A DNA stretch of 64,000 bases from positions 62,001 to 126,000 of the forward strand of contig NW_025963784.1 of NCBI RefSeq assembly GCF_023055435.1. The letters run 5' to 3'. This DNA comes from Haliotis rufescens. Taxonomy: Eukaryota. The stretch's first letter is position 1, and every line of letters starts with the position of its first letter. Position numbers and translations under genes: made by a program. Below the pieces are notes generated by a model. That model was not told where the DNA came from and searched no databases. It saw nothing but the letters and a program-made list of their open reading frames with translations. Shown piece by piece: positions 3,001 through 57,750 of this stretch.

Positions 3001-3201
3001 TGCATCGTGAATACTACTGCTTTGATGCAACTCGGCAATTTGTGAATAGGTCATATACTTTTTGTCAACTACAGATTCAAATGAAGGAGCCTTGGTGCTC
3101 ATAGCGTATCCCACCTGTGTGACTGATGGAGATTCTTACACAATGAACCTCCACGGATACTCTTTGAAACATTATCGACGGGCCTATTTATAACTTTGCA
3201 A

Positions 3202-3385
3202 ATGGCGTGTAAAAGTCTGAAACCACCCAGGCCTTACATCACAGGGAGAACATCAGCGCTTAAAGTGGAGGAGATTGTTAACATTCTGAGGAGTCCAGAT
3301 GAGAGCAAGACCATCCAGACTGCCCCCGCCACACCTCAGGGAGGACAGGTGTACCTCTATAAGATAGCATCGGGTATGAGAGAAG
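3202..3385 (+). CDS. Copy 1 coding exon 1: N-terminal half of CG-1-like DNA-binding domain
   Basis: ATG 3202, LKVEEIVNILRS..APATPQGGQVYLY, phase-1 donor G|GTGAGT at 3385/3386; paralogous to 24001-24181. Confidence 0.75.
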
Positions 3386-4522: not shown

Positions 4523-5592
4523 ACGTGTGGAAGGACGACAAATATCACTTCAGAAGTGATGGAACCCGGAAGCAGCCTAGCTCAAGTCCAGTCATAGTGA
4601 AGCAGTACCACAAGGCTTACACCGAGGACAAGGCAACAACAAGGGCCTTTGTCAGAGAAGCATCGTATCTGTACAACCAGCCTCTGAAACACGTCCTAGT
4701 GCAATATATCGGGGACCACACACAAGCACAGCCTGCTCCTCAACGTAAGAAGCGTGGTCAACAGACAGTTAATTCCCCAGGTTACAGTAAACGTAGAAAA
4801 GTAGAATCAACTGGTGGAGCTGTGCAGTCGGGTGTCACGGAGAACACTAACTCAAACCTGGACCCTGAAGATCATTCATCACCGACAGAATTGGAAGACA
4901 ACGGTAAATCAAACACTATTCTAGGTGTAACATTGAATGAAGCAAAGGTGTCAGAGACTGAAACAAAGAATGATCATGACACAAATCAGAAACGCAGCAG
5001 GACAGGAGATCATAGAGGTGATGATGACATTGAATATTTGGATACAACGTCAGGCTCCCCTGTCAAGAAACTCCGTTTGCAGCCTCAAGTTGACAATGAC
5101 AACACAGTTGTAACCTGTGTCACTAACACACCCTACGCTTATCTGTACACATTTCTAGAAGATGTAGAAAGGAATCGTGATGTGATAAGGGTCGTGCAAC
5201 AGGTTTTATCTTTATCAAGGTTCTGGAACAAGGACTGTACCAACAAAGACAACGCATGCTTGTCACTCATTGAAGAGGTCGACAAGAACTGGAATCTAGA
5301 TGCAATAAAAGCAAGGAACTGGGTTAAATGTTCTGTAAATACTGACGTTCTGAGCTTGAACCAAGACCGGTCAGTTTACATAAACCTCATCGCAGCAGTA
5401 CTTGTTGGAGCATGCCATACCAGGACTGAAGTACAGGACTTTTTGAAAACACTGAAGGATCCTCCTTCACACCCGCAGCATGTACAAGAGGACGTCCCCC
5501 TGTCACGTAACTGTACATACACAGTTGGCTGCTACACCATCAGAGGAGATGTTCTGTCTCGCCTGGAAACCAACGACTGGCTGACAGATGAA
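4523..5592 (+). CDS. Copy 1 coding exon 2: rest of CG-1-like domain, basic NLS-like motifs, start of Ulp1-like domain
   Basis: Acceptor tttacag|AC keeps phase (DVWKDDKYHF..FVREASYL..HVLVQYIGD); ends WLTDE|GTAAGT; 1070 nt, same length as 24944-26013. Confidence 0.8.
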
Positions 5593-6273
5593 GTAAGTAG
5601 TCCATCTGCTCTATTTACACAATCACACAAACTACATGCGTAGTTAATTATCCAAGAAAATCATTTCATAGAGCATGGGAGGCTTTCGATTTCATCAAAT
5701 GATGTCAGTATTAGGTATTAACTGAGGGCGTGAGGGTGGTGAGTGGTTCAGTCACGTAATACTCATTGATAGTGCCTTGATGTAGGCAAGGTAGAGCGTG
5801 AGTTTGGTTAAACGCCTCTTTGAACAGTAGTGTCATGGTGAGTTGGATTAAATTATGAAGAAATTCCAAAGTGAAGCATATCTTAGACGTTTACCACTTT
5901 GTTGATTCCCATGGCGAGTCTGCAAAGCGAAATGCGGCGCCTTGGACCATGAGCCCCCGTCTTAAGATTAATACAGCAACGTTTGACAGTTTCTTCTTTT
6001 TACACCAGTATTAGTTAACCATCAATTAATATAATAGTGCTAATTATCAACTCATTGCCATGCATCTCGATTATGCAATGATAACACTACTCACCTGCAA
6101 TGGGCATTGTGCACAAAATCTAGTACATCATCAGTTCAATTGTCAGTCATTGCTAACAGCCGAGATATTCTCCTCATGATGGATATGTGATGTGCAGCGG
6201 ATCCTGCTTTGATTTGAAATTACAAGCGTTCCCTTTGAACCGAAAGCATTGGGGGATTAAACAGTATAATAAA

Positions 6274-8732
6274 GGGCAAAGATATCATGGATATAGTTAT
6301 AAAGAAGGGAAAACGTAGCATCAATATCATAGGTCCTGAAGGATCAACACCTTTACATTACTCATGTGCAGTTGGAAATGTTAGCATTGTAAGCTACCTG
6401 TTACAGGAATCAGTGGCAATTGGTAATCCAAACAAGAAGGGTGAAACTGGACTTCATTTGGCATGTATATATGGGAATGCAGAAGTTGTTAAAATGTTAT
6501 TACAGAACAAGGGAATAAGTCATGTGACAGAAAATGCTGGCCGCACACCTCTACATGATGCAGCCTGGCAAGGACATAGGGAGGTTGTGGAGGTGTTATT
6601 ACAGAACAAGGCAAATGTGGATGAGAAACGTGATGATGGCAGCACACCTCTACATGATGCAGGCTGGCAGGGACATACGGAGGTTGTGGAGGTGTTATTA
6701 CAGAACAAGGCAAATGTGGATGAGAAACGTAATGATGGCAGCACACCTCTACATGATGCAGCCTACCAGGGTCATAGGGAGGTTGTGAGGGTGATATTAC
6801 AGAACAAGGCAAATGTGGATGAGAAAGATGAGGAAGGCAGCACACCTCTACATGATGCAGCCTGGCAGGGACATCGGGAGGTTGTGGAGGTGTTATTACA
6901 GAACAAGGCAAATGTGGATGACAAACGTGATGATGGCCGCACACCTCTACATGATGCAGCCTGGCAGGGACAGAGGGAGGTTGTGGAGGTGTTATTACAG
7001 AACAAGGCAAATATGGATGACAAACGTGATGATGGCCGCACACCTCTACATGATGCAGCCTGGCAGGGACAGAGGGAGGTTGTGGAGGTGTTATTACAGA
7101 ACAAGGCAAATGTGCATGAGAAAGGTGATGATGGCCGCACACCTCTACATGATGCAGCCAGGATGGGACATCGGGAGGTTGTGGAGGTGTTATTACAGAA
7201 CAAGGCAAATGTGGATGACAAACGTGATGATGGCCACACACCTCTACATGATGCAGCCTGGCAGGGACAGAGGGAGGTTGTGGATCAGTTATTACAGAAC
7301 AAGGCAAATGTGGATGACAAACGTGATGATGGCCACACATCTCTACATCTTGCAGCCTACCGGGGACATAGGGAGGTTGTGGAGGTGTTATTACAGAACA
7401 AGGCAAATGTGGATGACAAACGTGATGATGGCCGCACACCTCTACATGATGCAGCCTGGCAGGGACAGAGGGAGGTTGTGGAGGTGTTATTACAGAACAA
7501 GGCAAATGTGCATGAGAAAGGTGATGATGGCAGCACACCTCTATATGATGCAGCCAGGAAGGGACATCGGGAGGTTGTGGAGGTGTTATTACAGAACATG
7601 GCAAATGTGGATGATAAACGTGATGATGGCCGCACACCTCTATATCTTGCAGCCTACCGGGGACATAGGGAGGTTGTGGAGGTGTTATCACAGAACAAGG
7701 CAAATGTGCATGAGAAAGGTGATGATGGCAGCACACCTCTACATGATGCAGCCAGGAAGGGACATCGGGAGGTTATGGAGGTGTTATTGCAGAACAAGGC
7801 AAATGTGGATGAGAAAGATAAGGAAGGCTGCACATCTCTACATCGTGCATCCTACCAGGGACATAGGGAGGTTGTGGAGGTGTTATTACAGAACAAGGCA
7901 AATGTGGATGACAAACGTGATGATGGCCGCACACCTCTACATCTTGCAGCCTACCGGGGACATAGGGAGGTTGTGGAGGTGTTATTACAGAACAAGGCAA
8001 ATGTGGATGACAAACGTGATGATGACCGCACACCTCTACATGATGCAGTCTGGAAGGGTCATCGGGAGGTTGTGGAGGTGTTATTACAGAACAAGGCAAA
8101 TGTGGATGGTAAACGTGATGATGGCCGCACACCTCTACATGATGCAGCCTGGGAGGGACACAGGGAAGTTGTGGAGGTGTTATTACAGAACAAGGCAAAT
8201 GTGCATGATAAACGTGATAATGGCAGCACACCTCTACATGATGCAGCCAGGAAGGGACATCGGGAGGTTATGGAGGTGTTTTTGCAGAACAAGGCAAATG
8301 TGGATGATAAACGTGATGATGGCCGCACACCTCTACATCTTGCAGCCTACCGGGGACATAGGGAAGTTGTGGAGGTGTTATTACAGAACAAGGCAAATGT
8401 GCATGATAAACGTGATAATGGCAGCACACCTCTACATGATGCAGCCAGGAAGGGACATCGGGAGGTTATGGAGGTGTTTTTGCAGAACAAGGCAAATGTG
8501 GATGATAAACGTGATGATGGCCGCACACCTCTACATCTTGCAGCCTACCGGGGACATAGGGAGGTTGTGGAGGTGTTATTACAGAACAAGGCAAATGTGG
8601 ATGAGAAAGACGATAAAGAAGAAACTGCTTTACAAAAGCAGAGGCACAACATCACGATGATATTGCAAGGATTATAACTGAGGCAACAAATATACATGAC
8701 CTGACAAGCAGCCATAGTACAATTATGGATAG
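6274..8732 (+). pseudogene. Copy 1 ankyrin exon remnant (ORF 6287-8677, about 23 ANK repeats), 5'-deleted and with a terminal frameshift
   Basis: Intron sequence joins mid-exon sequence at 6273/6274 relative to copy 2; TPLHxAAxxGH repeats; A4 vs A5 at 8634-8637 shifts the frame before the AG|GTAAG donor at 8732. Confidence 0.7.
6530..8608 (+). repeat. Coding tandem array, 21 x 99 bp ankyrin units
   Basis: 2079 bp = 21 x 99 with no net indels; near-invariant GAGGTTGTGGAGGTGTTATTACAGAACAAGGCAAATGTG framework. Confidence 0.95.
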
Positions 8733-9754
8733 GTAAGAGCAATATGGAAATGATGCTTGAGTTGACAGCCCAAACACATATATTGTATACGCTGTTTTGC
8801 AGAACAGTTTTGAAACCTCACGAAACCATATGAGACCTCGAAGAGGACAGTACCATCAGACATATATCAAATATCTATTTCAGCTAAAAAAGAATATGGA
8901 CAGAGCATTTCTACAAGGCCCCCGAAACAACATACTAAAAGTCCCAAATCAATCAATCAAATATGTGATGAGAGACCAACAGTGTATTGATATTCCATGT
9001 CTGTCCATGTCTTGGAGGTCATCTTGGATTTTTGGGCCAGTCAGTTAGTGTGACAAGTTTTATGCATATATGTCCCAGCACACTGTTTCAGAGATAAAAG
9101 CTTCCACAGCCTAACCTCATATTTAGGAAATGTGTCGGCCATCTTGAAATTGCCAGCCATCTTGATGTTTTGTAGATTTGTCAATAGTCGAAAACGATCA
9201 ATAGTTGTGAATATCTTTTTAGAAACATAATATGGCTATTTTGCAACACAACACATGCTGTTTTTCATCAAAACATTGAACCTCATCTGAAATAAGGAAA
9301 ATACTATTGACAGATGGTTGCCATATTGGATTATGTAAATTAGACATATTTCCCAAACTGGGATTGCTGGGGACTTTAAGTATGTTGTTTTGGGGACCTT
9401 GTAGAAATGCATTGTGATGAAATGAACTCTATTGCTATTTGTTCCAAGTGTAACCTTATTCTCCATGGGCTACATATGTCAATGGGGACTTTGCCAAAAC
9501 ACTGAAATTATGTTAACCAATATTTGAACTTAATTAGGCTTCACTGTGTATAATATTGAATGATTCGTTGGTTTACGTTTATGAGTATGTGGGGCTTCCA
9601 TTTAGTTTGGAGCCTTTTTCATTAGATACGAATTCGAAAGCGCTGGAGGCTTTTACATCTTGATTTTGTATTATATGTCACAATAGCATCACTATTTTGA
9701 TTAAGTCCTATTTTCTCTGAAATGTTGTGTCAAGTGCATGTGGTATTGTTTCAG

Positions 9755-10211
9755 GGTGACAACCGATGGCCAGTTTCTTATGAAATCATCGTCAGTTCCA
9801 CACGGAAGCTATAACAATGGCGGTTGGCTTACATCCACACCACCAACATCAACGTGTCCCGTGAACCACACATCAGAAGAATTGCCAGGGGTTTATGTTC
9901 CGAGTCAACTGGGACAAGCAGTTTCCACAGACAGACAAAGTGTTATGGAAGAGATCGCCTTGCAGTCATCCCAACCATATCATATAGACGGAAATCTTAA
10001 CAACCTCCTTACAGATCCTGCACACATGGAGATACGTTCACCCAATCAAAGATCAGAAACCATATATGGAATCTCAAGTCATGTTCCCACCTATGTCCAT
10101 GCTCCAGTAGTTGGTGACACATTGCCTAGTTCAGATACCACTAGTAATTCTGAGAATACCATCATTCACTACACTGAGTCTGGGGAAAAGATAGAGCTGC
10201 TGCAGCTCTAA
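9755..10211 (+). CDS. Copy 1 terminal exon (Ser/Thr/Pro-rich tail ending EKIELLQL)
   Basis: Acceptor ttgtttcag|G matches the phase-2 donor at 8732 (AG+G = Arg); ORF 9738-10211; paralog 37765-38122. Confidence 0.6.
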
Positions 10212-10340
10212 AAGTGGTCTAGAAAGGAGTTATCATTGTTATTATGATGTGTCCAATGTTACAGTATACATATACAGTTTTACAACCTCCATTAGGGGTC
10301 AGTCGTCCGAATTCGGTTTGCAGAAAATAACGAGTTATTT

Positions 10341-10500
10341 GTGAAACCCAAGAGCACGCGTATGGTTATGACAAACCTAGAAACATAATCTGAGCGAACC
10401 TGGATTCGAACCCACAATCATAGGTATCTGGTGTACCCAAGGGACGCAACTCTGCACAGCGAATCGCGGCGCCTTAGACGACTGGGCCACCCGTACCCCC
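10341..10500 (-). mobile_element. tRNA-derived SINE (Leu-like head, long A-to-B box spacer), 3'-truncated
   Basis: Reverse complement of 13115-13270: TGGCCCAGTCGTCTAAGGCGCC and GGTTCGAATCC boxes. Confidence 0.7.
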
Positions 10501-11634
10501 GTGGGAGTGATTTGTGTCAATGTAGTTTTGACGTTTCTGTTCGCATCTCGATTCCATGAAAAACTCATTGTACGTTACAAATTCTAGGAACATGGCTAAC
10601 TTTAATGTTTAGAAGATTACATAACAGTTTCTTACAAATGTTTATAACTGGACATATGCAGATTTTAGTGTGTTCCGAACTTTCTTAAAGCAAAGTGTTT
10701 TGTTGAAATTAGTGGGAGTGAGTTCAGATTGACGTACACAATGAATGTTTGCAGCTACATGTCGCTGTGTAAAATATGTACTTGCAGGAACACGTGGGTG
10801 TCTTCTATCATAGTCGGTATTGTCACTTTGATTTGTTTCTGCACCATTTCCAGTGTCAGAGTTGTGAAGTCTCACACCCAATACGAAGCCATGTAACATG
10901 TTGTACATGCAATATAGACTTTAAAGTATGTTCACGGTGACCTCATATTCAGGAATATAATGATTGTTTTATTTCAAAGCAATTTATCCTATTAATTTCC
11001 ATGATGTCTTGGCACACATGAAAATGCTAAGATCAAATAGAATTCTTTGAGCTGTGTCCCTTAAACAAATACAGACTATATAGTCATGGGCAAAACCAAC
11101 CAGTATTACATTCTTCCATGATATCTGACATATTCTTATGTGACATATTATGTGATAGATCACTGAACGAATCCCCGTAAGATATCGTTTTTATTACAAA
11201 CATTGTATCTGAAAACGTATCTAAGGAGCGCAAGATGTTGGAAGCATTATTGTACTAACATTCATGGTTTAAGTAATATACTTTTATCATCAGATAACTC
11301 TTGTTAGTGCTGCATTAGTTAAATGGCCTGTTATGTATTGCCCATAGTTGACCCATTGTTTAACCCCTTTGTGACTGTAGACCTACAATTACGTTTTTCA
11401 ATAGAAGTTGTTTTTTATTCATTTATATTGTATGCTGATTTACTGATTTGGCAATATAGTTTGAACCGTTTTCTAAGTTAACCTTCGCGTGTCAATTCGG
11501 AAATCCCCTCGTAACACTGTGCCATACAGTATAAACATACAGTAACGATTACTGTTAATTTCTAAAATGTCACCAGTGTCATTCATGTGACAAACATATG
11601 AAAATCGTTATGATGTTATGCAGACGTACATATA

Positions 11635-11880
11635 CAGTCGAACCCCGATGTCTTGAACTCGGATGTGCCGATTCCAGGGTCCAGGCGAAATCACAGTCCA
11701 AAATCTTACCATATTTATAGTATTGTTACCTGAATGCTCGACATGAGTGTTTTGAGTTCAATTTATAGTCCCCAAAGTTGAAAGGTAAAACTTATCAAGA
11801 TCCAGGTCGAATTCAAATAGTTCGAATAACTCGAACTATTTCTTTGGTCCCCAGAAGTTCGAGGCAATTGGGTCCGATTG
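11635..11880. mobile_element. Degenerate MITE, Tc1/mariner-pogo-like ends
   Basis: TA-CAGTCGAACCCC at left; imperfect inverted end GGGTCCGATTG at right; subterminal TTCGA motifs. Confidence 0.45.
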
Positions 11881-12399
11881 TTCCTTTATGTTCATATATC
11901 TGAATATGTATACAGGTAGAACAAGGTGCTTATCCAAACGCAGTGAAGTCACACAGACAGCCCATACCAGTGCAGCGTGTATCACAATCAGAACCAATCA
12001 CAAACTATATTCAGGCACTATCCTGATCTAAATATACACTTTCCCTGTGAAAAAGACAAATAAGTGTCTTTGTTGATTATAATCAAATAAAGAAAATACG
12101 CAAAACCAAACCAAAACAAACTGACATTTGAATGAAGTTATCCAGGTTACATGGCATAAATAAGCAGCATGTTTTGCAAGCACAATACATGTGTGATGAT
12201 CAAGTATTTGTAAATACCTTGCTCTGAAATAGAGTGGGCTAGATCGCCTCCATTGTCTTATGGATAGAGTATTAGACCGATTTATTTCGTATGTGTGGCC
12301 TCGAGGCCAATAGTACAATGACATTTTGTTGTAATTCGTCGTGAAGCACCACTTGTATACTGATTAGATTGTAGCTAAATATGGTGTACACAGTTTTAT

Positions 12400-24000: not shown

Positions 24001-27000
24001 ATGGCGCCTAATCCGAAACCACCCGAGCCTTACCGGACAGGGAGAACATCAGCCCTTAAAGTGGAGGAAATTGTTAACATTCTGAGGAGTCGGGATGAGA
24101 GCAAGACCATCCAGACTGCCCCCGCCACACCCCATGGAGGGGAGGTGTACCTCTATAAGATAACCTCGGGAATGAGAGAAGGTGAGGCAGTTGTGTTCAG
24201 GCTTAATATTACCATGAGTCAGGGATTAATACATATGAACAATGTTAATATTTCATGGAAAGCTGATATTATTTTTTACACAATTTGAATTCATTGGGGT
24301 TGTTAAGTACACATGACCAATGTCCTCAAAGCCACATTCATATACATGTACGTTATTAGTAATAGTCTGCTTGACGTCGGGGTCACCCTGCCCTGGTATC
24401 AGCTTCCTTGTACAGCCCTGTGATAACCGGTTTTATGTTTGCTAATATTGTTGACAAGTGATAGTCGTGCAAATAAGTGACTACGTGAATTAAGTTTATT
24501 TGTCTGTATCATCATCAAAACGACTTCTTTTACTTATGTTCTATCTTTGTTTTTCTATTTACTCTTTCCATCCCCTCTACAACAATTGTGTACTTAAATA
24601 ATGAACATTGTTTGATGTCAACTAGTAGAAAATCCATTGTTGGATTAATCAATATTGGCTAAACAAGAATCAAGCATCGTGTTGCATCTCAGAGAAGGAA
24701 AAAAGGACATGGTATTTATCATCACAACCTCTAATACAACATATTTATGCATGACCTTACAGCTGATTTGGCATTAAGGTGGGTTGATTTTAGAGTTATG
24801 TTACACTATTGACTGTTCACAGTTTTATTAATTAACATCTACATCACAGGTGACACACTAACACACAAAGAATTTTGAGGGATAGTTCATCTTCAGGATT
24901 ACAACATTGTTTGCAATGTTATGATATTAATTTCTATTTGCAGATATCTGGAAGGATGACAAATATCACTTCAGAAGTGATGGAACTCGGAAGCAGCCTG
25001 GCTTAAGTCCAGTCATAGTGAAGCAGTACCACAAGGCTTACACCGAGGACAAGGCGACAACAAGGGCCTTTGTCAGAGAAGCATCGTATCTGTACAACCA
25101 GCCTCTGAAACACGTCCTAGTGCAATATATCGGGGACCACACACAAGCACAGCCTGCTCCCCAACGCAAGAAGCGTGGTCAACAGACAGTTAATACCTCA
25201 GGTGACAGTAAATGTAGGAAAGTAGAATCAACTGGTAGAGCTGTGCAGTCGGGGGTCACGGAGAACACTAACTCCAACCTGGACCCTGAAGTTCATTCAT
25301 CACCGACAGAATTGGAAAATAACGGTAAATCAAACACTATTCTAGGTGTAACATTGAATGAAGCAAAGGTGTCAGAGACCGAAACAAAGAATGATCATGA
25401 CACAAATCAGAAACGCTGCAGGTCAGGAGATCATAGAAGTGATGATGACATTGAATATTTGGGTACAACGTCAGGCTCCCCTGTCAAGAAACCTCGTTTG
25501 CAGCCTCAGGTTGACAATGACAACACAGTTGCAACCTGTGTCACTAACACACCCTACGTTTATCTGTACACATTTCTAGAAGAAGTAGAAAGGAATCGTG
25601 ATGTGATAAAGGTCGTGCAACATGTCCTAGCATTATCTAGGTTCTGGAACAAGGACTGTACCAACAAAGGCAATCCGTGCTTGTCACTCATTGAAGAGGT
25701 CGACAAGAACTGGAATCTAGATGCAATTAAAGCAAGGAACTGGGTTAAATGTGCTGTTAATACTGACGGTCTGAGCTGGAACCAAGACGGTTCAGTTTAC
25801 ATAAAGCTCATCGCAGCAGTACTTGTTGGAGCATGTCATACCAGAACTGAAGTTTACGACTTTGTGAAAACACTGAAGGATCCTCCTTCACACCTGCAGC
25901 ATGTACAAGAGGACGTCCCCCTGTCACGTGACTGTACATACACAGTTGGCTGCTACACCATCAGAGGAGATGTTCTGTCTCGCCTGGAAACCAACGAGTG
26001 GCTGACAGATGAAGTAAGTAGTCCACCTGCAATATTTACACAATCACACAAACTACATGCCTAGTTAACCATCCAAGAAAATCATTTCATAGAGCATGGG
26101 AGGCTTTCGATTTCATCAAATGATGTTAGTATTAGATATAAACTGGAGGCGTGAGGGTGGTGAGTTGTTCAGTCACCTAATACTCATTGATAGTGCCTTG
26201 AGGTAGGCGTGGTGTCATGGTGCGTTGGATTAAATTATGAAGAAAGTAATGCACATCTTTGACGTTAACCACTTTGTTGATTCCCATGGTGAATCTGCAT
26301 AGCGAAATGCGGCGCCTTGGACCACTGAGACCCCATCTTAAGATTAATACAGCAACTTTTGGCGGTTTCTTCTTGTTACACCAGTATTAGTTAACTATCA
26401 ATTCATATAATGGTGCTAATTATCAACTCATTGCCATGCATCTCGATTCTGCAATGATGGCACTACTCACCTGCAATGGGCATTGTACACAAAATCTAGT
26501 ACATCACCAGTCAAATTGTCAGTCATTGCTAACAGCCGATATATTCTCTTCATGATGAATATGTGATGTGCAGCGGATCCTGCTTTGATTTGAAATTACA
26601 AGCGTTCCTTTTGAAGCAAACGCATTTGGCGATTAAACAGTATAATAAACATTCTAATAAATGAACTCTTTCCTGTCCAGATCATGGACATATACCTGCA
26701 CCTCCTGGAGAGAGAGTGGTGTTCCCGTGTCAGCTTCCACTGTCTGGTGCTGCCTACAGAGACAATCCTACTGTGGGAGGCAGGACAGTACACAGACAGA
26801 ATAAGGGGGAAAGATGTGAGTGACGTGAGATTTTTATATTTCTTATAATTCTTTCATTCTGAGTGTACCATTGCATGTCCACCCTACCAAGAACAAGGGC
26901 AAGACTCGAAAGATACTTTGTAATAATTGTATGTTTTTTGTGATAACATATGATTCGTCTATGCCATGATTGCGTATTCGGCATGCTAGAAGTTGTCACT

Positions 27001-30000
27001 TGCAATTGTGCGCACGAAGCGACCATATGCTGCAATGGGTTTCAATTGAGTCAAAGCCAGTAACCCCATTGATCATAATGCTATTCGTTTTCAATATGCA
27101 GTTACAAAAGCAGATATTGCACATGAACATATTCGTCTTGCTACATATTATTTTACGAAGTGAAAATCTGGTTGTCAGAGAGGGGTCTTTAGAAGTTCTA
27201 AGTTCCAAGATCATACCAATTCACTAATATCTCTGTTACTGCATCATATCCATCTTATGTGAAGCACGTGTTTCTTGATATATTGATCGTACACCGGAAA
27301 GGCATTTGTTGTGAACTTTCAGGAAAATTTGACAAACTACACGTGGATCTTAATGCCAGTGAACATGCCACGTAATCAACATTGGGTGCTACTGGTGGCT
27401 AATGTCAAGGATGGAACAGTGGGCGTGGTTAATTCTAAACCCTCCTTAGATGTGGAGGACAAGGTTGTACAACACTGGAGGTAGGTGGACAGAACAGTGG
27501 GCGTGGTCAATTCTAAACCCGCCTTATATGTAGAACACTCATTTGTACAACACTAGAGGTAGATAAAAAAAAAAGAAGAGGACGTGTGGCTGCACATTAT
27601 AAATGTTAAAAATAGCTATCCAATTTGAAATGTTGAAATGTTGATTTCTCAAAAACAAACATGAATGTAAATAAGATCCATCGAAAAATGTTCGATACAC
27701 CCACATTTGTAGCTTTTACTTTTGGGTAGAAGATATAGAACAACTTGTTCACAGGGTTACCCAGTTCCCCAAATGGGTACACTGTGTGAATGATTTAAAC
27801 GCCATAAATACAGTTATGTCACTCATTCATTTAAACCATAACATCTGTATTTGCTAACATAAAACCTAATTATGGACAAAGCAGGAGAGAACATCAGAAA
27901 TGCCAGGACCGGATATTTTAGGCACTGCTGTATTTACCTTCTGTTCTACCTTTACTTTAGCACCAGTCCACATGAGTTGAAGACTTTATTGCCATCGAGT
28001 AATATACATGTATTCCTCAGGCTCTTTGTAAACCACTTGAAATCTACGTCTAAGGAAAGGAGCAAGTCATGGATGAAGAAACAGTACCCGGGGATAGAAC
28101 AGTCAGATGGACACAGCTGTGGGATATTCGTTCTGATGGTAGGTTGGTTTGAAGCTATGTTTTTGATATGAAAGGCAACATGTGTCTCAAAAACCACGTA
28201 TGAACGATACCTTTTCATTTCTAACCTTCATATTCTCAGGCTGCTGATGCAATTTTGTCGGAGAAGTCTCCAGGCATCATGAGGAACTGTCACGTTGAGA
28301 AATACAGGCTGTATGTACTTCAGAGGATACTACAGTATGCCAAGGACAAGGGAGATATGCATGGTGGACGAAATCACATGATGGCAGTTGATCGACAGGG
28401 TAATGTCACAAACGAAATTCAAACTGTAACGCTGGAGACAAGAGATGTACTGGAAAATAGCTGTACAATGACAACAGAACAAGGAGGTCCAACTATTCAT
28501 GAAGAGGATGGACATGAAACACATGAAGGAACCGACTGTGCTATCGCCAGTGATGAAAGTATGCATTCTGGAGATCATTACTATGTTACGTAATTGTAAG
28601 GCGTTACGCAAGGTATTATATTTTAGATCTACATGTGCAATGTTGTACACTGCTTTCTTACAAACGTTATTTGTTTTCACAGATACAGAGGACTATCCAT
28701 GTTTGGATCAGCACCTGTTGCATAAGCAGAAGATGGCATGCTTGTTAGTGGTTGCTTTGGCGGAGAATAACCTGGAGGAGAGGATGCTATGGGCAGGGTC
28801 TGACACAGGGACTCGCGTGGAAAGAGAAACCTACAAAAAATATATTGTTTGGGCACTCAAGGTTTTTGACATCAATGAAGAAGAATACACTGAAAATATG
28901 ATGAAACCTATTTTATCCCAATTGGCGGGATGCTGTCTCCATCATGAATCAGGGTCATATAGAATAAGAAATCATGAAGTAGCAATAAAGCTAAGAGAAA
29001 TACTGCTCAGTGATGTGGGACAGTTGGTTGAAAGGATGGATCTCGAGTTCATATTTCGTTATGTGACATTTAGAGGTGATCCAACCGAAGAGGAACAACT
29101 AGATGTGCCTTTTAAAATCGAATTGAAACATGATGATCTGCATATTGTAGCAAGGCGGTTTGTTGCAGCTGTACATGACAGAAAGTTTGCCTTTGTGTGC
29201 ATGCATTCACTATTCCAGGTAGAGACATTTGTTAATATGGTTTGGGAGAATCTCTTGCATAATCTGAACAAGGACAGATCTGAACTGTTGAAAGTATTGT
29301 CAAAAAATGACATTATATATGGATATTCCTTTCTGTTTTGGGCGAGCGTCACAGGCAACTCGAATTTGCTGAAGAAAGCATTGAACAGTGTTCAGTTTAA
29401 GGTAAAGAACAGACAGGAAGCCTTGTTTGGAAGTTGCTTTGGGAGTAGTTTGGCCAACTTCGATTACTTGTGTTCCAAAAATAACTGGAAGTTGGATATG
29501 TTGTGTATGACGCTACCCGAGCTCCCAAGACCTCTTATCATCAAACTGCAGTTGGCAGTTGTAGATGATCTGAGAGTAAAGTTTGGTAAATGTTCACTTT
29601 TGGACATTGCCTGTATGGGTGGGTTGTCTACAGTGGCTTCCAGACTGTCACATTTGATGAAGACGAGCCAGAACAAGAACAGTTCAAGAAAGAATACTTA
29701 TGTACATTATGCAGCCATGTGTCAAAAGGGCAAAGATATCATGGATATAGTTATAAAGAAGGGACAACGTAGCATCAATATCATAGGTCCTGAAGGATCA
29801 ACACCTTTTCATTACTCATGTGCAGTTGGAAATGTTAGCAATGTAAGCTACCTGTTACAGGAAGTACTGGACATTGGTAAGCCAAACAAGAAGGGTGAAA
29901 CTGGACTTCATTTGGCATGTATATATGGGAATGCAGAAGTTGTTAAAATGTTATTACAGAACAAGGGAATAAGTCATGTGACAGACAATTATGGCAGCAC

Positions 30001-33000
30001 ACCTCTACATGATGCAGCCTGGCAAGGACATAGGGAGGTTGTGGAGGTGTTATTACAGAACAAGGCAAATGTGGATGAGAAAGATAAGAAAGGCCGCACA
30101 CCTCTACATCGTGCAGCCTCCCAGGGACATAGGGAGGTTGTGGAGGTGTTATTACAGAACAAGGCAAATATGAATGAGAAACGAATTGATGGCAGCACAC
30201 CTCTACATGATGCAGCCAACAAGGGACACAGGGAGGTTGTGGAGGTGTTATTACAGAACAAGGCAAATGTGAATGAGAAACGTAATGATGGCAACACACC
30301 TCTACATCTTGCAGCCGTCCAGGACCATTGGGAGGTTGTGGAGGTGTTATTCCAGAACAAGGCAAATGTGAATGAGAAACGGAATGATGGCAGCACACCT
30401 CTACATGATGCAGCCTACCAGGGACATAGGAAGGTTGTGGAGGTGTTATTAAAGAAGAAGGCAAATGTGGATGAGAAAGATAAGGAAGGCCGCACACCTC
30501 TACATGATGCAGCCTACCAGGGACATAGGAAGATTGTGGAGGTGTTATTACAGAACAAGGCAAATGTGAATGAGAAACGGAATGATGGCAGCACACCTCT
30601 ACATGATGCAGCTTACCAGGGACATAGGAAGGTTGTGGAGGTGTTATTACAGAACAAGGCAAATGTGGATGAGAAAGATAAGGAAGGCCGCACACCTCTA
30701 CATGATGCAGCCGACCATGGACATAGGAAGGTTGTTGAGGTGTTATTACAGAACAAGGCAAATGTGAATGAGAAACGGAATGATGGCCGCACACCTCTAC
30801 ATGATGCAGCTTACCATGGACATAGGAAGGTTGTGGAGGTGTTATTACAGAACAAGGAAAATGTGGATGAGAAAGATAAGAAAGGCCGCACACCTCTACA
30901 TGATGCAGCCTCCCAGGGACATAGGAAGGTTGTGGAGGTGTTATTACAGAACAAGGCAAATGTGAATGAGAAACGGAATGATGGCAGCACACCTCTACAT
31001 GATGCAGCCTACCATGGACATAGGAAGGTTGTGGAGGTGTTATTACAGAACCAGGCAAATGTGGATGAGAAACGTAGTGATGGCAACACACCTCTACATC
31101 ATGCAGCCTACCATGGACAAAGGGAGGTTGTGGAGGTGTTATTACAGAACAAGGCAAATGTGGATGAGAAAGATAAGAAAGGCCGCACACCTCTACATCG
31201 TGCAGCCTCCCAGGGACATAGGGAGTTTGTGGAGGTGTTATTACAGAACAAGACAAATGTGCATGAGCAACGTCAAGATGACAGCACACCTCTACATGAT
31301 GCAGCCTACCAGGGACACAGGGAGGTTGTGGAGGTGTTATTACAGAACAAGGCAAATGTGAATGAGAAACGTAATGATGGCAACACACCTCTACATGATG
31401 CAGCCTACCAGGGACATAGGAAGGTTCTGGAGGTGTTATTACAGAACAAGGCAAATGTGAATGAGAAACGGAATGATGGCAACACACCTCTACATGATGC
31501 AGCCTACCAGGGACATAGGAAGGTTGTGGAGGTGTTATTACAGAACAAGGCAAATGTGGATGAGAAAGATAAGGAAGGCAGCACACCTCTACATGATGCA
31601 GCCGACCAGGGACATAGGAAGGTTGTGGAGGTGTTATTACAGAACAAGGCAAATGTGAATGAGAAACGGAATGATGGCAGCACACCTCTACATGATGCAG
31701 CCTACCATGGACATAGGAAGGTTGTTGAGGTGTTATTACAGAACAAGGCAAATTTGAATGAGAAACGTAATGATATCAACACACCTCTACATCTTGCAGC
31801 CTGGCAGGGACATTGGGAGGTTGTGGAGGTGTTATTAAAGAACAAGGCAAATGTGGATGAGAAAGATAAGAAAGGCCGCACACCTCTACATCGTGCAGCC
31901 TACCAGGGACATAGGGAGGTTGTGGAGGTGATATTACAGAACAAGGCAAATGTGAATGAGAAACGTAATGATGGCAGCTCACCTCTAAATGATGCAGCCT
32001 ACCAGGGACATAGGGAGGTTGTGGAGGTGTTATTACAGAACAAGGCAAATGTGGATGAGAAAGATAAGAAAGGCCACACACCTCTACATCGTGCAGCCTC
32101 CCAGGGACATAGGGAGGTTGTGGAGGTGTTATTACAGAACAAGGCAAATGTGAATGAGAAACGTAATGATGGCAACACACCTCTGCATGTTGCAGCCTGG
32201 CAGGGACATAGGGAGGTTGTGGAGGTGTTATTACAGAACAAGGCAAATGTGGATGAAAAACGTAATTATGGCAGCACACCTCTACATATTGCAGCCTACC
32301 AGGGACATAGGGAGGTTGTGGAGGTGTTATTACAGAACAAGGCAAATGTGGATGAAAAACGTGATGATGGCCCTACACCTCTACATGAGGCAGCTTACCA
32401 GGGACATAGGGAGGTTGTGGAGATGATATTACAGAACAAGTCAAATGTGAATGAGAAACATCAAGACGGCAGCACACCTCTACATCTTGCAGCCTGGCAT
32501 GGACATTCGGAGGTTGTGGAGGTGTTATTACAGAACAAGGCAAATGTGGATGAGAAAGATAAGGAAGGCCGCACACCTCTACATGATGCAGCCTGGCAGG
32601 GACACAGGGAGATTGTGGAGGTGTTATTACAGAACAAGGAAAATGTGGATGAGAAAGATAAGGAAGGCTGCACACCTCTACATCGTGCAGCCTCCCAGGG
32701 ACATAGAGAGGTTGTGGAGGTGTTATTACAGAACAAGGCAAATATGAATGAGAAACGGAATGATGGCAGCACACCTCTACTTGATGCAGCCTGGCAGGGA
32801 CATAGGGAGGTTGTGGAGGTGTTATTACAGAACAAGGCAAATGTGAATGAGAAACGAAATGATGGCAACACACCTCTACATCTTGCAGCCGTCCAGGAAC
32901 ATTGGGAGGTTGTGGAGGTGTTATTACAGAACAAGGCAAATGTGAATGAGAAACGGAATGATGGCAGCACACCTCTACATAATGCAGCCTACCAGGGACA

Positions 33001-36000
33001 AAGGAAGGTTGTGGAGGTGTTATTAAAGAACAAGGCAAATGTGGATGAGAAAGATAAGGAAGGCCGCACACCTCTACATGATGCAGCCGACCAGGGACAT
33101 AGGAAGGTTGTGGAGGTGTTATTACAGAACAAGGCAAATGTGAATGAGAAACGGAATGATGGCAGCACACCTCTACATGATGCAGCTCACCAGGGACATA
33201 GGAAGGTTGTGGAGGTGTTATTACAGAACAAGGCAAATTTGGATGAGAAAGATAAGAAAGGCCGTACACCTCTACATGATGCAGCCTCCCAGGGACATAG
33301 GAAGGTTTTGGAGGTGTTATTACAGAACAAGGCAAATGTGAATGAGAAACGTAATGATGGCAGCACACCTCTACATGATGCAGCCTCCCAGGGACATAGC
33401 AAGGTTGTGGAGGTGTTATTACAGAACCAGGCAAATGTGGATGAGAAACGTAATGATGGGAACACACCTCTACATCTTGCAGCCTGGCAGGGACATAGGG
33501 AGGTTGTGGAGGTGTTATTACAGAACAAGACAAATGTGCATGAGCAACGTCAAGATGACAGCACACCTCTACATGAGGCAGCCTACCAGGGACACAGGGA
33601 GGTTGTGGAGGTGATATTACAGAACAAGTCGAATGTGAATGAGAAACATCAAGAAGGCAGCACACCTCTACATCTTGCAGCCTGGCATGGACATTGGGAG
33701 GTTGTGGAGGTGTTATTACAGAACAAGGCAAATGTGGATGAGAAAGATAAGGAAGGCCGCACACCTCTACATGATGCAGCCTGGCAGGGACACAGGGAGG
33801 TTGTGGAGGTGTTATTACAGAACAAGGAAAATGTGGATGAGAAAGATAAGGAAGGCAGCACACCTCTACATCGTGGAGCCTCCCAGGGACATAGAGAGGT
33901 TGTGGAGGTGTTATTACAGAACAAGGCAAATATGAATGAGAAACGGAATGATGGCAGCACACCTCTACATGATGCAGCCAACAAGGGACACAGGGAGGTT
34001 GTGGAGGTGTTATTACAGAACAAGGCAAATGTGAATGAGAAACGTAATGATGGCAACACACCTCTACATCTTGCAGCCGTCCAGGACCATTGGGAGGTTG
34101 TGGAGGTCTTATTACAGAACGAGGCAAATGTGAATGAGAAACGGAATGATGGCAGCACACCTCTACATAATGCAGCCTACCAGGGAGAAAGGAAGGTTGT
34201 GGAGGTGTTATTAAAGAACAAGGCAAATGTGGATGAGAAAGATAAGGAAGGCAGCACACCTCTACATGATGCAGCCAACCAGGGAGATAGGAAGGTTGTG
34301 GAGGTGTTATTACAGAACAAGGCAAATGTGGATGAGAAACGGAATGATGGCAGCACACCTCTACATGATGCAGCTTACCAGGGACATAGGAAGGTTGTGG
34401 AGGTGTTATTACAGAACAAGGCAAATGTGGATGAGAAAGATAAGGAAGGCCGCACACCTCTACATGATGCAGCCGACCAGGGACATTGGAAGGTTGTGGA
34501 GGTGTTATTACAGAACAAGGCAAATGTGGATGAGAAAGATAAGGAAGGCCGCACACCTCTACATGATGCAGCCGACCAGGGACATTGGAAGGTTGTGGAG
34601 GTGTTATTACAGAACCAGGCAAATGTGGATGAGAAACGTAATGATGGCAACACACCTCTACATCATGCAGCCTACCGTGGACAAACGGAGGTTGTGGAGG
34701 TGTTATTACAGAACAAGGCAAATGTGCATCGGCAACGTCAAGATGACAGCACACCTCTACATGATGCAGCCTACCAGGGACACAGGGAGGTTGTGGAGGT
34801 GTTATTACAGAACAAGGCAAATGTGAATGAGAAACGTAATGATGGCAGCACACCTCTACATGATGCAGCCTACCAGGGACATAGGAAGGTTGTGGAGGTG
34901 TTATTACAGAACAAGGCAAATGTGAATGAGAAACGGAATGATGGCAACACACCTCTACATGATGCAGCCTACCAGGGACATAGGAAGGTTGTGGAGGTGT
35001 TATTACAGAACAAGGAAAATGTGGATGAGAAAGATATGGAAGGCCGTACACCTCTACATGATGCAGCCGACCAGGGACATAGGAAGGTTGTGGAGATGTT
35101 ATTACAGAACAAGGCAAATGTGAATGAGAAACGGAATGATGGCAGCACACCTCTACATGATGCAGCCTACCATGGACATAGGAAGGTTGTGGAGGTGTTA
35201 TTACAGAACAAGGCAAATGTGAATGAGAAACGTAATGATAGCAACACACATCTACATCTTGCAGCCTGGCAGGGACATAGGGAGGTTGTGGAGGTGTTAT
35301 TACAGAACAATGCAAATGTGGATGAGAAAGATAAGAAAGGCCGCACACCTCTACATCGTGCAGCCTCCCAGGGACATAGGGAGGTTGTGAAGGTGTTATT
35401 ACAGAACAAGGCAAATGTGAATGAGAAACGGAATGATGGCAGCACACCTCTACATGATGCAGCCTACCAGGGACATAGGGAGGTTGTGGAGGTGTTATTA
35501 CAGAACAAGGCAAATGTGGATGAGAAAGATAAGAAAGGCCGCACACCTCTACATCTTGCAGCCTCCCAGGGACATAGGGAGGTTGTGGAGGTGTTATTAC
35601 AGAACAAGGCAAATGTGGATGAGAAACGGAATGATGGCAGCACACCTCTACATGATGCAGCCTACCAGGGACATAGGGAGGTTGTGGAGGTGTTATTACA
35701 GAACAAGGCAAATGTGAATGAGAAACGTTATAATGGCAGCACACCTCTACATGATGCAGCCTCGCAGGGACATAGGGAGGTTGTGGAGGTGTTATTACAG
35801 AACAAGGCAAATGTGGATGAAAAACGTAATGATGGCAGCACACCTCTACATCTTGCAGCCTACCAGGGACATAGGGAGGTTGTGGAGGTGTTATTACAGG
35901 ACAAGGCAAATATGGATGAAAAACGTGATGATGGCAACACACCTCTACATGAGGCAGCCTACCAGGGACGTAGGGAGGTTGTGGAGGTGATATTACAGAA

Positions 36001-36610
36001 CAAGTCAAATGTGAATGAGAAACATCAAGACGGCAGCACACCTCTACATCTTGCAGCCTGGCATGGACATTGGGAGGTTGTGGAGGTGTTATTACAGAAC
36101 AAGGCAATTGTGGATGGGAAAGATAAGGAAGGCCGCACACCTCTACATGATGCAGCCTGGCAGGGACATAGGAAGGTTGTGGAGGTGTTATTACAGAACA
36201 AGGCAAATATGGATGAGAAAGATAAGGAAGGTTGCACACCTCTACATGATGCAGCCTGGCAGGGACACAGGGAGGTTGTGGAGGTGTTATTACAGAACAA
36301 GGCAAATGTGGATGTGAATGATAAGGAAGGCAGCACACCTCTACATGATGCAGCCTGGCAGGGACATAGGAAGGTTGTGGAGGTGTTATTACAGAACAAG
36401 GCAAATGTGGATGAGAAAGATAAGGAAGGCAGCACACCTCTACATGATGCAGCCTGGCAGGGACACAGGGAGGTTGTGGAGGTGTTATTACAGAACAAGG
36501 CAAATGTGGATGAGAAAGATAAGAAAGGCTGCACACCTCTACATGATGCAGCCTGGCAGGGATACATGGAGGTTGTGGAGGTGTTATTACAGAACAACGC
36601 AAATGTTTAA
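24001..36610 (+). CDS. Copy 2 gene: CG-1-like domain + Ulp1/C48-like protease + STAND-associated helical region + about 70 ankyrin repeats, about 3300 aa (exons 24001-24181, 24944-26013, 26681-26815, 27323-27480, 28021-28138, 28240-28558, 28683-36610)
   Basis: All junctions are GT-AG with matching phases (1,0,0,2,0,1), giving a 9909-nt open frame. Motifs WLTDEIMDIYL, LMPVN..HWVLLV..VVNS, QSDGHSCG. An alternative phase-1 donor exists at 28399. Confidence 0.8.
27414..27562 (+). repeat. 78-bp tandem duplication of an exon end and its splice donor
   Basis: GAACAGTGGGCGTGG..TGTACAACACT(G/A)GAGGTAG starts at 27414 and 27492; donors at 27481 and 27559. Confidence 0.85.
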
Positions 36611-36616
36611 GAGAAA
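29984..36616 (+). repeat. Coding tandem array, 67 x 99 bp ankyrin units
   Basis: 6633 bp = 67 x 99 with no net indels; higher-order periods of 12, 35 and 36 units. Confidence 0.95.
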
Positions 36617-37764
36617 GACGATAAAGAAGAAACTGCTTTACAAAAAGCAGAGGCACAACATCACGATGATATTGCAAGGATTATAACTGAGGCAACAAAT
36701 ATACATGACCTGACAACCAATCATGGTACAATTATAGATAGGTAAGAGCAATGTGGAAATGATGCTTGAGTTGACAGCCCAAACACATATATTGTATACG
36801 CTGTTTTGCATAACAGTTTTGAAACCTCACGAAACCATATGATACCTCGAAGAGGACTGTACCATCAGACAATAAATCAAAATATCTATTTCAGCTAAAT
36901 AAAGAATATAGACAGAGCATTTCTACAAGACCCCAAAACAACATACTAAAAGTCCCAAATCAATCAATCAAATATGTCATGAGAGAACAACAGTGTATTG
37001 ATATTCCATGTCTGACCATGTCTTGGAGGTCATCTTGGAATTTTGGGCCAGTCAGTTAGTGTGACAAGTTTTATGCATATAAGTCCCAGCACACTGTTTC
37101 AGAGATAAAAGCTTCAACAGTCTAAACTCATATTTAGGAAATGTGTCGGCCATCTTGAAATTGCCGGCCATCTTGATGTTTTGTAGATTTGTCAATAGTC
37201 GAAAACGATCAATACGTGTGAATATCTTTTTAGAAACGTAATATGACTATTTTGCAACACAACACATGCTGTTTTTCATCAAAACATTGAACCTCATCTG
37301 AAATAAGGAAAATACTATTGAGAGATGGTTTCCATATTGAATTATGTAAATTAGACATATTTCCCAAACTGGGATTGCTTGGGACTTTAAGTATGTTGTT
37401 TTGGGGACCTTGTAGAGATGCATTTTGGTGAAATGAACTCTATTGCTATTTGTTCCAAGTGAAACCTTATTTTCCATGGGCTACATATGTCAGTGGGGAC
37501 TTTGCAAAAACATTGAAATTATGTTAACCAATATTTTAACTGGATTAGGCTTCACTGTCTATAATAATGAATGATTCGTTGGTTTACGTTTATGAGTATG
37601 TGGGGCTTCCATTTAGTTGGAGTCTTTTTCATTAGATACGAATTCGAAAGCGCTGGAGGCTTTTACATCTTGATTTTGTATTATATGTCACAATAGCATC
37701 ACTATTTTGATTAAGTCCTATTTTCTCTGAAATGTTGTGTCAAGTGCATGTGGTATTGTTTCAG

Positions 37765-38122
37765 GGTGACAACCGATGGCCAGTTTCTTATAAAATCATC
37801 GTCAGTTCCATACGGAAGCTATAACAATGGCGGTTGGCTTACATCCAACCCACCAACATCAACTTGTCCCGTGAAGCACACATCAGGAGAATTGCCAGGG
37901 GTTTATGTTCCGAGTCAACTGGGACAAGCAGTTTCCACAGACAGACAAAGTGTTATGGAAGAGATCGCCTTGCAGTCATCCCAACCATATCATATAGACG
38001 GAAATCTTAACAACCTCCATACAGATCCTGCACACATGGAGATACGTTCACCAAATCAAAGATCAGAAACCATATATGGAAACTCAAGTCATGTTCCCAC
38101 TTGTTATTATGGTGTCCAGTGA
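37765..38122 (+). pseudogene. Copy 2 ancestral terminal exon, downstream of a premature stop and shortened by a 145-bp deletion
   Basis: In phase with the donor at 36741; lacks the equivalent of 10091-10235. Confidence 0.55.
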
Positions 38123-38405
38123 TACAGTATACATATACAGTTTTACAACCTCCATTAGGGGTCAGTCGTCTGAATTTGGGATGCAGAAAATAACGAGTTA
38201 TTTGTCATTTGTGTCGATGTAGCATTGATGTTTCGGTAAGCATATCAATTCCATAGCTAATGGACCATAGCTAACTTCATGTCGAAAAAAGTCCTTTACG
38301 TTGCGTAGAGGATTACATAATAGATTCTTTCAAATGTTCCTAACTGGACATATGCACCTTTCAGTGTGTACCAAACTTTCCTGGGGCATTGTGTTAAGTT
38401 GAATT

Positions 38406-49284: not shown

Positions 49285-49462
49285 NNNNNNNNNNNNNNNN
49301 NNNNNNNNNNNNNNNNNNNNNNNNNNNNNNNNNNNNNNNNNNNNNNNNNNNNNNNNNNNNNNNNNNNNNNNNNNNNNNNNNNNNNNNNNNNNNNNNNNNN
49401 NNNNNNNNNNNNNNNNNNNNNNNNNNNNNNNNNNNNNNNNNNNNNNNNNNNNNNNNNNNNNN
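49285..49462. other. Assembly gap
   Basis: Run of N. Confidence 1.
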
Positions 49463-57602: not shown

Positions 57603-57750
57603 NNNNNNNNNNNNNNNNNNNNNNNNNNNNNNNNNNNNNNNNNNNNNNNNNNNNNNNNNNNNNNNNNNNNNNNNNNNNNNNNNNNNNNNNNNNNNNNNNN
57701 NNNNNNNNNNNNNNNNNNNNNNNNNNNNNNNNNNNNNNNNNNNNNNNNNN
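57603..57750. other. Assembly gap
   Basis: Run of N. Confidence 1.

Follow-up and report, generated by a model that had tools for sequence, protein, structure and literature searches.

The window analysed here is a stretch of 64,000 nucleotides from the red abalone Haliotis rufescens (contig C6, positions 62001-126000, in an assembly of 1.33 Gb), and it harbors a gene with a long array of tandem ankyrin repeats. From its N-terminus onwards, this gene encodes an N-terminal region, a putative C48 peptidase of the Ulp1/SENP type, a helical region, two cap-like ankyrin repeats, 67 tandem ankyrin repeats and a tail (Table 1). The array, with which this study is mainly concerned, is the ankyrin part of exon 7 and belongs to a multi-exon, transcribed gene family. 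Tandem Repeats Finder places it at 29949-36606, with a period of 99, 67.3 copies, 88% matches, 0% indels and a score of 9828, and a single open frame (28499-36610, 2703 amino acids, aa) spans all of its units. An earlier reading of the letters and their open reading frames, referred to below as the sequence-only reading, had counted 67 units from position 29984; in this register, which we adopted, there are indeed 66 complete units and a 67th that is shortened by a TAA stop codon. The closest named protein, P0001, is an 'uncharacterized protein' of 2079 aa from Haliotis cracherodii, which is 93% identical over the helical region.

Table 1. Exons, repeats and related features of the window, in order of position.
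Feature	Position	Strand	Basis and remarks
Locus A, paralogous 21-unit array	6530..8608	+	segmental duplicate, ~90% identical
Exon 1, start codon	24001..24179	+	tblastn with P0001 residues 1-60, 90% identity; GT..AG joint 24179>24942 (run X10)
Exon 2, long linker and start of C48 domain (EWLTDE)	24942..26013	+	P0001 residues 61-418, 89.7% identity
Exon 3, peptidase domain	26681..26815	+	joints 26013>26681 and 26815>27323; P0001 residues 417-472
Exon 4, C48 peptidase with catalytic His motif (QHWVLLV)	27323..27478	+	Pfam Peptidase_C48; joints
Exon 5, C48 peptidase with Gln and Cys motif (EQSDGHSCG)	28019..28137	+	joints; SENP alignment
Exon 6, acidic linker	28239..28558	+	joints; P0001 residues 555-661, 93% identity
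Exon 7 start, helical region	28683..29740	+	P0001 residues 661-1094, 93% identity
Two diverged, cap-like N-terminal ankyrin repeats	29741..29983	+	Pfam Ank/Ank_2, residues 458-530 of the 28499-30100 translation
Complete ankyrin units (n = 66)	29984..36517	+	33 codons (99 bases) each; no indel, no stop
67th ankyrin unit	36518..36610	+	30 codons, then TAA at 36608-36610 (codon 31)
Exon 7 remainder behind the stop	36611..36741	+	in frame (EKDDKEETALQKAEAQ...) to donor AG/GT; P0001 tail, 90% identity
Tail exon, downstream of the stop	37763..38113	+	tblastn with P0001 tail, 85% identity

The exons were located singly by tblastn with P0001, not as a joined model. In transcript contigs from four public runs, presumed to be RNA, seven GT..AG joints coincide with the exon borders derived from the H. 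cracherodii protein; 26013>26681, 28137>28239 and 28558>28683 are found in all four runs, and 27478>28019 in three of them. Since the joints fall exactly on the modelled borders, the family is transcribed and spliced as modelled.

Exons 4 and 5 encode a putative C48 peptidase. The Pfam family Peptidase_C48 (PF02902) matches exon 4 with 25.6 bits against a cut-off of 20.7 (E = 1.2e-5) and exon 5 with 11 bits only, and it is also part of the precomputed domain list of P0001. The peptidase stretch of P0001 aligns to SENP2, SENP1 and Ulp1 (PDB 1tgz, 2iyc and 1euv; E = 6e-4 to 1e-3), including the HW, Q and CG motifs of SENP2 and SENP1, which can equally be read in the exons of the window. While the predicted peptidase thus shares the His, Gln and Cys motifs with the SENP/Ulp1 proteases, it differs from them by the giant ankyrin array and by an Asn in place of an Asp: the Asn of 'VNS' in P0001 aligns with the SENP Asp of 'LDS', which we take to be the triad Asp of a catalytic set that presumably comprises His, Asp and Cys together with an oxyanion Gln. 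Two side observations concern exon 4. A 78-base tandem duplication (27414-27562; 1.9 copies, 84% matches) covers its 3' end and donor, so that a second donor is possible, and a low-depth X2 contig joins exon 3 directly to exon 5 (26815-28021), omitting exon 4 and with it the catalytic His.

A CG-1 domain (PF03859) on exon 1 is not supported beyond a weak resemblance, as its 13.2 bits (E = 0.073) lie below the cut-off of 23.5. Nor is an assignment to the STAND (signal transduction ATPases with numerous domains) proteins or NOD-like receptors (NLRs) supported: NACHT and NB-ARC gave no Pfam match in any exon at E-values up to 10, both are missing from the precomputed domains of P0001, and no Walker A motif was seen by eye. 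The helical region has almost no relatives beyond abalone. Pfam assigns it to no family, except for a weak Ank_2 match at its end, and a phmmer search against 1.84 billion representatives returned only 6 matches, which come from molluscs wherever they are named. An AlphaFold2 model built on a 15-row alignment of paralogues is unusable (mean predicted local distance difference test, pLDDT, of 35.7), and the neighbors of the region in the ESM Atlas, which carry a fungal NLR-like winged-helix domain, are a lead only, as their value of 0.86 is below the trust threshold of that resource. Inspection by eye revealed no secretion signal, and an intracellular location is accordingly probable.

The array is predicted to fold into an ankyrin solenoid, as its units align without gaps to solved ankyrins and designed ankyrin repeat proteins (DARPins). 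Pfam Ank matches the translation of 28499-30100, which comprises the caps and the first unit, with E = 1.8e-22, and the paralogous array at locus A with E = 5e-213; in a phmmer search of the PDB with units 3-8, ankyrin-1 (E = 1.5e-179) and the DARPin 6mol_A (E = 2.1e-125) were found, and the NOMPC spring was also among the best solved relatives. Among each other, the units are on average 88.9% identical in DNA and 77.5% in protein. The sequence-only reading had described their framework as almost fixed even at silent sites, and our per-codon table of the 66 complete units confirms this, the same codon occurring in 57-65 units at the framework positions (T6 ACA 65, P7 CCT 65, L8 CTA 65, H9 CAT 64, A11 GCA 65, A12 GCC 61, V19 GTT 63, V20 GTG 62, E21 GAG 65, V22 GTG 63, L23 TTA 62, L24 TTA 65, Q25 CAG 62, N26 AAC 64, K27 AAG 61, A28 GCA 57, N29 AAT 65 and V30 GTG 59).

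The variation is far from uniform across codons, a point that had been singled out for checking. The amino-acid entropy is highest at positions 13 (2.26 bits), 10 (1.91), 2 (1.88), 5 (1.81) and 3 (1.58), followed by positions 31 (1.22), 1 (1.19), 18 (0.98), 14 (0.87) and 17 (0.83), and does not exceed 0.78 bits at any of the remaining positions of the unit. Seven variable positions had been listed before, namely the hairpin triplet, the residue before TPLH, the residue after the H and the di-residue after AA. The residues given for them are correct but incomplete: position 5 can also be P and position 10 also V or I, and the hairpin types include DNY, RID, RSD, RNY, RDD, HQE, DME and RYN in addition to those listed. 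Moreover, positions 17 and 18 (R/W and E/K) and 31 (D/N/H), which had gone unlisted, vary as well. Similarly, the 'small vocabulary' ascribed to the array is an apt description of each single position, but not of the seven in combination, which give 41 distinct words in 66 units.

These positions invite a comparison with designed ankyrin libraries. The classic randomised set of DARPins, whose libraries are reportedly those of Binz et al. in 2003, comprises positions 2, 3, 5, 13, 14 and 33, and this set is consistent with the differences among the internal repeats of 6mol_A. Four of the five most variable positions of the array belong to it, whereas position 14 is a weaker match and position 33 is nearly fixed in the array. 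The correspondence is closer still with the ANK-N5C scaffold (DxxGxTPLHxAAxNGH...x), whose numbering coincides with our register and for which the library description in PMC4308713 gives positions 2, 3, 5, 10, 13 and 33 as randomised and states that 2, 3, 5, 10 and 13 were chosen for their high entropy in natural ankyrins. The five positions of highest entropy in the array are exactly these five, which would happen by chance in 1 of 237,336 cases, and the match to designed libraries noted in the sequence-only reading is thereby borne out. Given that the same positions are the least constrained in ankyrins generally, this match shows tolerance, not selection; that changes are favored there is shown by the rate tests described below. 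Apart from the consensus-like scaffold of 33 residues that the abalone array shares with the designed libraries, the two differ in several respects. The array is natural and germline-encoded, with 67 units compared with 2-5 internal repeats; its positions 1, 18 and 31 vary too, whereas 33 and 26 do not; its residues at each position are few and lie one or two mutational steps apart; and its position 10 is mostly Asp, not Leu.

In the rate tests, amino-acid changes at the variable positions were compared with silent changes in the framework. By the Nei-Gojobori method (NG86), the nonsynonymous divergence (dN) at the seven listed positions is 0.46 within the array, compared with a synonymous divergence (dS) of 0.045 in the framework, and between this array and that of locus A, where the flanks are ~9-10% diverged, the respective values are 0.58 and 0.040. 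Maximum likelihood under GY94, on a fixed tree and with a shared silent rate, yields an omega (dN/dS) of 3.75 for the seven listed codons and of 0.99 for the framework, and rejects omega = 1 for the seven codons with twice the difference in log likelihood (lnL) at 37.1 (2dlnL; p = 1.1e-9). The family-wide tests covered 21 arrays with 503 units in all; each array received the same weight, and the bootstrap was taken over arrays. Here, the ratio of nonsynonymous diversity (pN) to the synonymous diversity of the framework (pS) is 6.65, 4.69, 4.21, 5.03, 6.67 and 6.44 at positions 1, 2, 3, 5, 10 and 13, respectively, and about 2.2 at positions 14, 18 and 31, and for all nine positions the bootstrap interval exceeds 1. 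For the entire framework, pN/pS is 0.66 (interval 0.53-0.84), and none of the 21 arrays has a ratio of pN in the variable codons to pS in the framework below 2.4. P0001 of H. cracherodii, with 24 units, is most variable at positions 2, 5, 18, 10, 3, 13, 1 and 14.

Could this pattern be mutational or technical in origin, that is, caused by hypermutable codons or by noise in the assembly of long repeats? Some of the changes are CpG transitions (R to H and R to C), and long arrays are hard to assemble, the two copies of the present one in the assembly being one unit apart. However, the majority of the changes are not CpG transitions, the two assembly copies otherwise agree except for 3 bases in 6.5 kb, and the pattern recurs across the 21 arrays as well as in a protein from another species. 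The wobble bases of variable codons vary no more than the framework does: the third base is C in 494 of 503 units for codon 5 and T in 489 of 503 for codon 10, while diversity is 0.36 at the first two bases of these variable codons. In pairs of units with the same residue, the synonymous diversity is 0.031-0.078 in codons 1, 2, 3, 5, 10 and 13, compared with 0.065 in the framework; codon 14 alone is high in this measure (0.39). Local hypermutation is ruled out by these wobble bases, and we regard an artefactual origin in general as very improbable. As a regional hot spot, the age of the units and relaxation all fail to explain the rate pattern, positive selection is its simplest reading.

The arrangement of the units points to rearrangement. 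Stretches of 4-5 successive units reappear at lags of 12, 26, 35 and 38 units, and the array is thus a mosaic of duplicated blocks with no regular higher-order repeat. Its second copy in the assembly, on contig C594, contains an additional, distinct unit between units 23 and 24; the flanks of the two copies differ at 2 of 10,275 bases (99.98% identical), and 3 single-base differences separate the arrays themselves, each of them altering an amino acid. Of five pairs of arrays present on two contigs, this is the one that differs in length, either through an allelic in-register deletion or through a slip of the assembly. Within the array, 50 of the 66 units have their nearest relative, which indicates that it grew mainly by duplication within itself. 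Between arrays, units differ at 3.82 of 69 framework bases, and within arrays at 3.20. The framework dS is ~0.045 inside the array and ranges from 0.02 to 0.14 when paralogous arrays are compared, and the values between arrays do not follow the dS of the helical exon (0.05-0.19). This small excess between arrays, together with the lack of correspondence in dS, fits either an exchange between copies or a recent pool of units that they shared. The units are accordingly young or homogenised, and the arrays gain and lose single units and multi-unit blocks without leaving the register; the reshuffling by unequal crossover that the sequence-only reading had proposed is supported by the recurring blocks, the varying unit numbers and the one-unit difference between the copies. 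Of the 41 seven-position words in this array, 15 are also found in some other array and 26 are private to it, so diversification continued after the genes had been duplicated.

The helical region matches the genome at 30 sites, a count that includes assembly duplicates; all are on the plus strand, on C6, C72 and C594:41.62-41.89 Mb, and their open frames measure 184-2745 aa. From these, 19 further arrays of 5-38 units were retrieved, mostly in perfect 99-base spacing. The family consists of roughly 20 tandem copies with 5-67 units each, of which the present one is the largest. C6 repeats a part of C594, and C72 a part of C6, nearly base for base; these are probably alternate haplotigs, and the family counts are consequently inflated. 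In one paralogue, the helical region contains a TAA on C594 but not on C6. In about 10 or more of the other 19 paralogues, the frame stays open from the helical region across the array as far as the donor, and the whole looks like a birth-and-death family.

From these observations, an explanation can be put together that we consider fairly probable as a whole, namely that of a tandem C48-ankyrin family in which unequal recombination goes along with diversifying selection on patches of the concave face. In-register unequal recombination and conversion would keep the scaffold uniform and shuffle the units, while positive diversifying selection would separate the residues of the beta-turn and the first helix, which form the concave face. 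With their concave faces diversified, we propose, each array would amount to a long series of different binding patches. These most likely would steer the attached peptidase, or a scaffold function, toward fast-changing intracellular partners, and the outcome would resemble a germline-encoded recognition repertoire. The recognition role of the variable surface is accordingly a putative one.

Alternatively, the solenoid of 69 repeats might have a structural role, as a spring or scaffold, in which differences between neighbors limit misfolding and aggregation or tune the charge. That ankyrin-1 and the NOMPC spring are among the best solved relatives would suit such a role, as would the composition of the variable residues, which are mostly charged or polar and drawn from restricted alphabets, and the tendency of the hairpin type to depend on position 31, with D-K-E/K coming after D31 and R-N-D after N31. 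Yet adjacent units are 77% identical in protein and distant units are no more alike, so that an avoidance of similar neighbors is not visible; paralogues bear largely different words; and the variable positions are those of the binding face in designed binders, according to the library description in PMC4308713, and in fungal NLR ankyrins, according to the sections on selected sites in PMC4986451. We therefore consider a purely structural role rather improbable.

Several points weigh against the recognition explanation. When the variable codons of the present copy are given a rate of their own in GY94, the fit is slightly better (2dlnL ~5, p ~0.02) and omega drops to ~1-1.5, which is not significant; these models are not fully converged, the constrained one lying 0.7 lnL above the free one. 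Counts on the tree agree, with 70.5 nonsynonymous changes over 17.7 sites and 13.5 synonymous changes over 3.3 sites at the seven listed codons of this array, which corresponds to an omega of ~1. We attribute this value to the very small number of silent sites and mostly to a single CGT/CGG dimorphism in codon 1. Family-wide, the NG86 silent diversity of the variable codons is 2.3x that of the framework, an excess to which codon 14 and multi-step codon paths contribute most. Furthermore, the variable class was picked after inspection of the data, recombination violates the fixed tree that was used, every tree being approximate, and the one-unit difference between the two copies may stem from an error in the assembly. 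The transcript contigs are 90-100% alike, and may thus derive from paralogues or a sister species; they are not proof that this copy is expressed. Finally, there are signs of decay: the framework of this array is without purifying selection on missense changes (omega 0.9-1.4), the copy carries a premature TAA, its tail exon is shortened, and about 8-9 of the 21 family copies, locus A included, are visibly broken by stops, frameshifts or truncations. Diversifying selection, as first suggested by the sequence-only reading, is thus supported with caveats: at the level of the gene family, amino-acid change clearly exceeds silent change across the 21 arrays, whereas the support is weaker for this copy alone, where silent change at the variable codons nearly keeps pace.

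The same signs of decay raise the possibility that the array is young and decaying, a product of recent runaway unequal crossover that multiplied a few ancestral types of unit; it would have inherited its pattern of variable positions from functional ancestors and would now drift neutrally as a pseudogene, its diversity no longer under selection. Besides the framework omega of ~1, the low omega of the variable codons measured against their own silent sites and the broken relatives, this would account for the predominance of nearest relatives within the array and for the state of its 3' end. Codon 31 of the last unit is TAA here and in the copy on C594, but GAT in locus A and Tyr in P0001. Behind the stop, the frame continues like the tail of P0001 to the donor at 36741/36742, 131 bases further on, and the match of the tail exon ends at residue 168 of the 203 tail residues of P0001, whereas that of locus A reaches residue 203. 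The present copy may thus have been truncated recently, with the TAA removing its tail. Still, 4.7% of random substitutions would create a stop, so that ~6.1 stops are expected from the synonymous count, while none is observed in the 66 units, which are also free of indels over 6.5 kb (P = 0.002 for the stops, or P = 0.015 with the terminal TAA included). It follows that the open frame of the array was maintained until very recent times, while single missense changes in one of its 67 units cost little. In addition, the three base differences between the assembly copies all change amino acids, drift cannot raise dN in the seven codons to tenfold the silent divergence, let alone yield an excess in 21 of 21 arrays, and the 26 private words show that diversification went on after the duplication. 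Taken together, we find it unlikely that the array is a neutrally drifting pseudogene, and continue to favor recombination with diversifying selection on its concave face.

The repeats of the Podospora nwd/het-e family, reportedly described by Paoletti et al. in 2007, belong to the closest known kind of system, the internally conserved ankyrin (ANK), tetratricopeptide (TPR) and WD repeats of fungal NLRs. Other solenoids with a variable concave face and fast-evolving tandem clusters are the leucine-rich repeats of plant NLRs and the variable lymphocyte receptors of lampreys; these have a different fold, and somatic assembly is without evidence in abalone. For fungal NLR repeats, the parts of PMC4986451 that deal with them report internal conservation, polymorphic repeat numbers, concerted evolution and positive selection, with the selected or polymorphic sites on the concave face, save for one exception. 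The abalone family likewise has near-identical tandem units, varies in their number and shuffles them within and between paralogues, and it shows positive selection on a few concave-face positions, as placed via the ANK-N5C scaffold and not via a structure of its own. Unlike the fungal genes, it is found in an animal host and has a C48 peptidase and a helical region ahead of the repeats instead of NACHT or NB-ARC, and its 67 units compare with 21 in the largest ANK example of PMC4986451. According to the same paper, high internal conservation is found in 0.8% of metazoan ANK, TPR and WD repeats (Dyrka et al., 2014). With a mean protein identity of 77.5%, the present array remains below the threshold used there, at least 85% over at least 100 aa, while sub-blocks and some paralogues come closer to it, such as the paralogous array L014 with a framework dS of 0.010.

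A bolder interpretation, which we put forward as possible though doubtful, is that abalone possess a germline repertoire of intracellular recognition proteins in which a C48 protease is aimed by long ankyrin arrays, a previously undescribed plan. In the same tentative interpretation, the concave residues are diversified by selection and the units are shuffled within and between ~20 tandem genes, which would make the family an independent animal counterpart of the fungal NLR repeats and a natural analogue of DARPin libraries. If this is true, animal evolution would have arrived at the solution of the engineers, a fixed ankyrin scaffold with diversity at positions 2, 3, 5, 10 and 13, and the family would be a metazoan case of the concerted evolution and diversifying selection in solenoids that has so far been mainly fungal, with this mode of receptor evolution tied to a protease rather than to a NOD module. 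With 243 distinct seven-position words in 503 units, the family would provide hundreds of natural and presumably foldable variants of the surface, and it is a concrete gene family for the study of disease resistance in abalone. In the literature, covered mostly at the level of titles and abstracts, we found no description of this family or of internally conserved hypervariable ankyrin arrays in molluscs. In the parts of PMC12627906 on this subject, abalone ankyrin genes are described as enriched on a non-syntenic homologous chromosome, and ankyrin expansions are linked to host defence via work cited there.

Within H. rufescens, a distant paralogue with the same order of parts is LOC124124203 (XP_048244847.1, P0005), annotated as an 'uncharacterized protein', which has a Peptidase_C48 domain, a related helical region with 25% identity and a very long ankyrin region. 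Its ankyrins are, by contrast, ordinary and diverged, with a mean identity of 30% among 13 TPLH-anchored units. The isoforms of this gene (P0005 and P0008-P0012) measure 3841, 3809, 3808, 3776, 3743 and 3734 aa, and several of them differ by exactly 33 residues; these steps correspond to one ankyrin unit and are either an effect of read alignment or a real difference in units.

Some minor observations concern the remainder of the window. It contains two runs of N, at 49285-49462 (178 bases) and 57603-57750 (148 bases). Antisense open frames extend over the array (29943-36677, minus strand), and a second sense frame lies at 6813-8660 (plus strand), with lengths of up to 1434 aa. Such long antisense or +2 frames were rejected as coding and are most likely by-products of a stop-free unit that is repeated many times. 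The duplicate at locus A (3184-12000) is without an equivalent of 26650-29724, which comprises exons 3-6 and the greater part of the helical region, and its tail has a 1-base deletion; conversely, ~145 bases of it (10091-10235) are without a counterpart in the tail exon of the larger gene (37763-38205). The array of locus A is nearly identical to L006, an array located 123 kb away on C594, with a mean nearest distance of 0.5 bases per unit.

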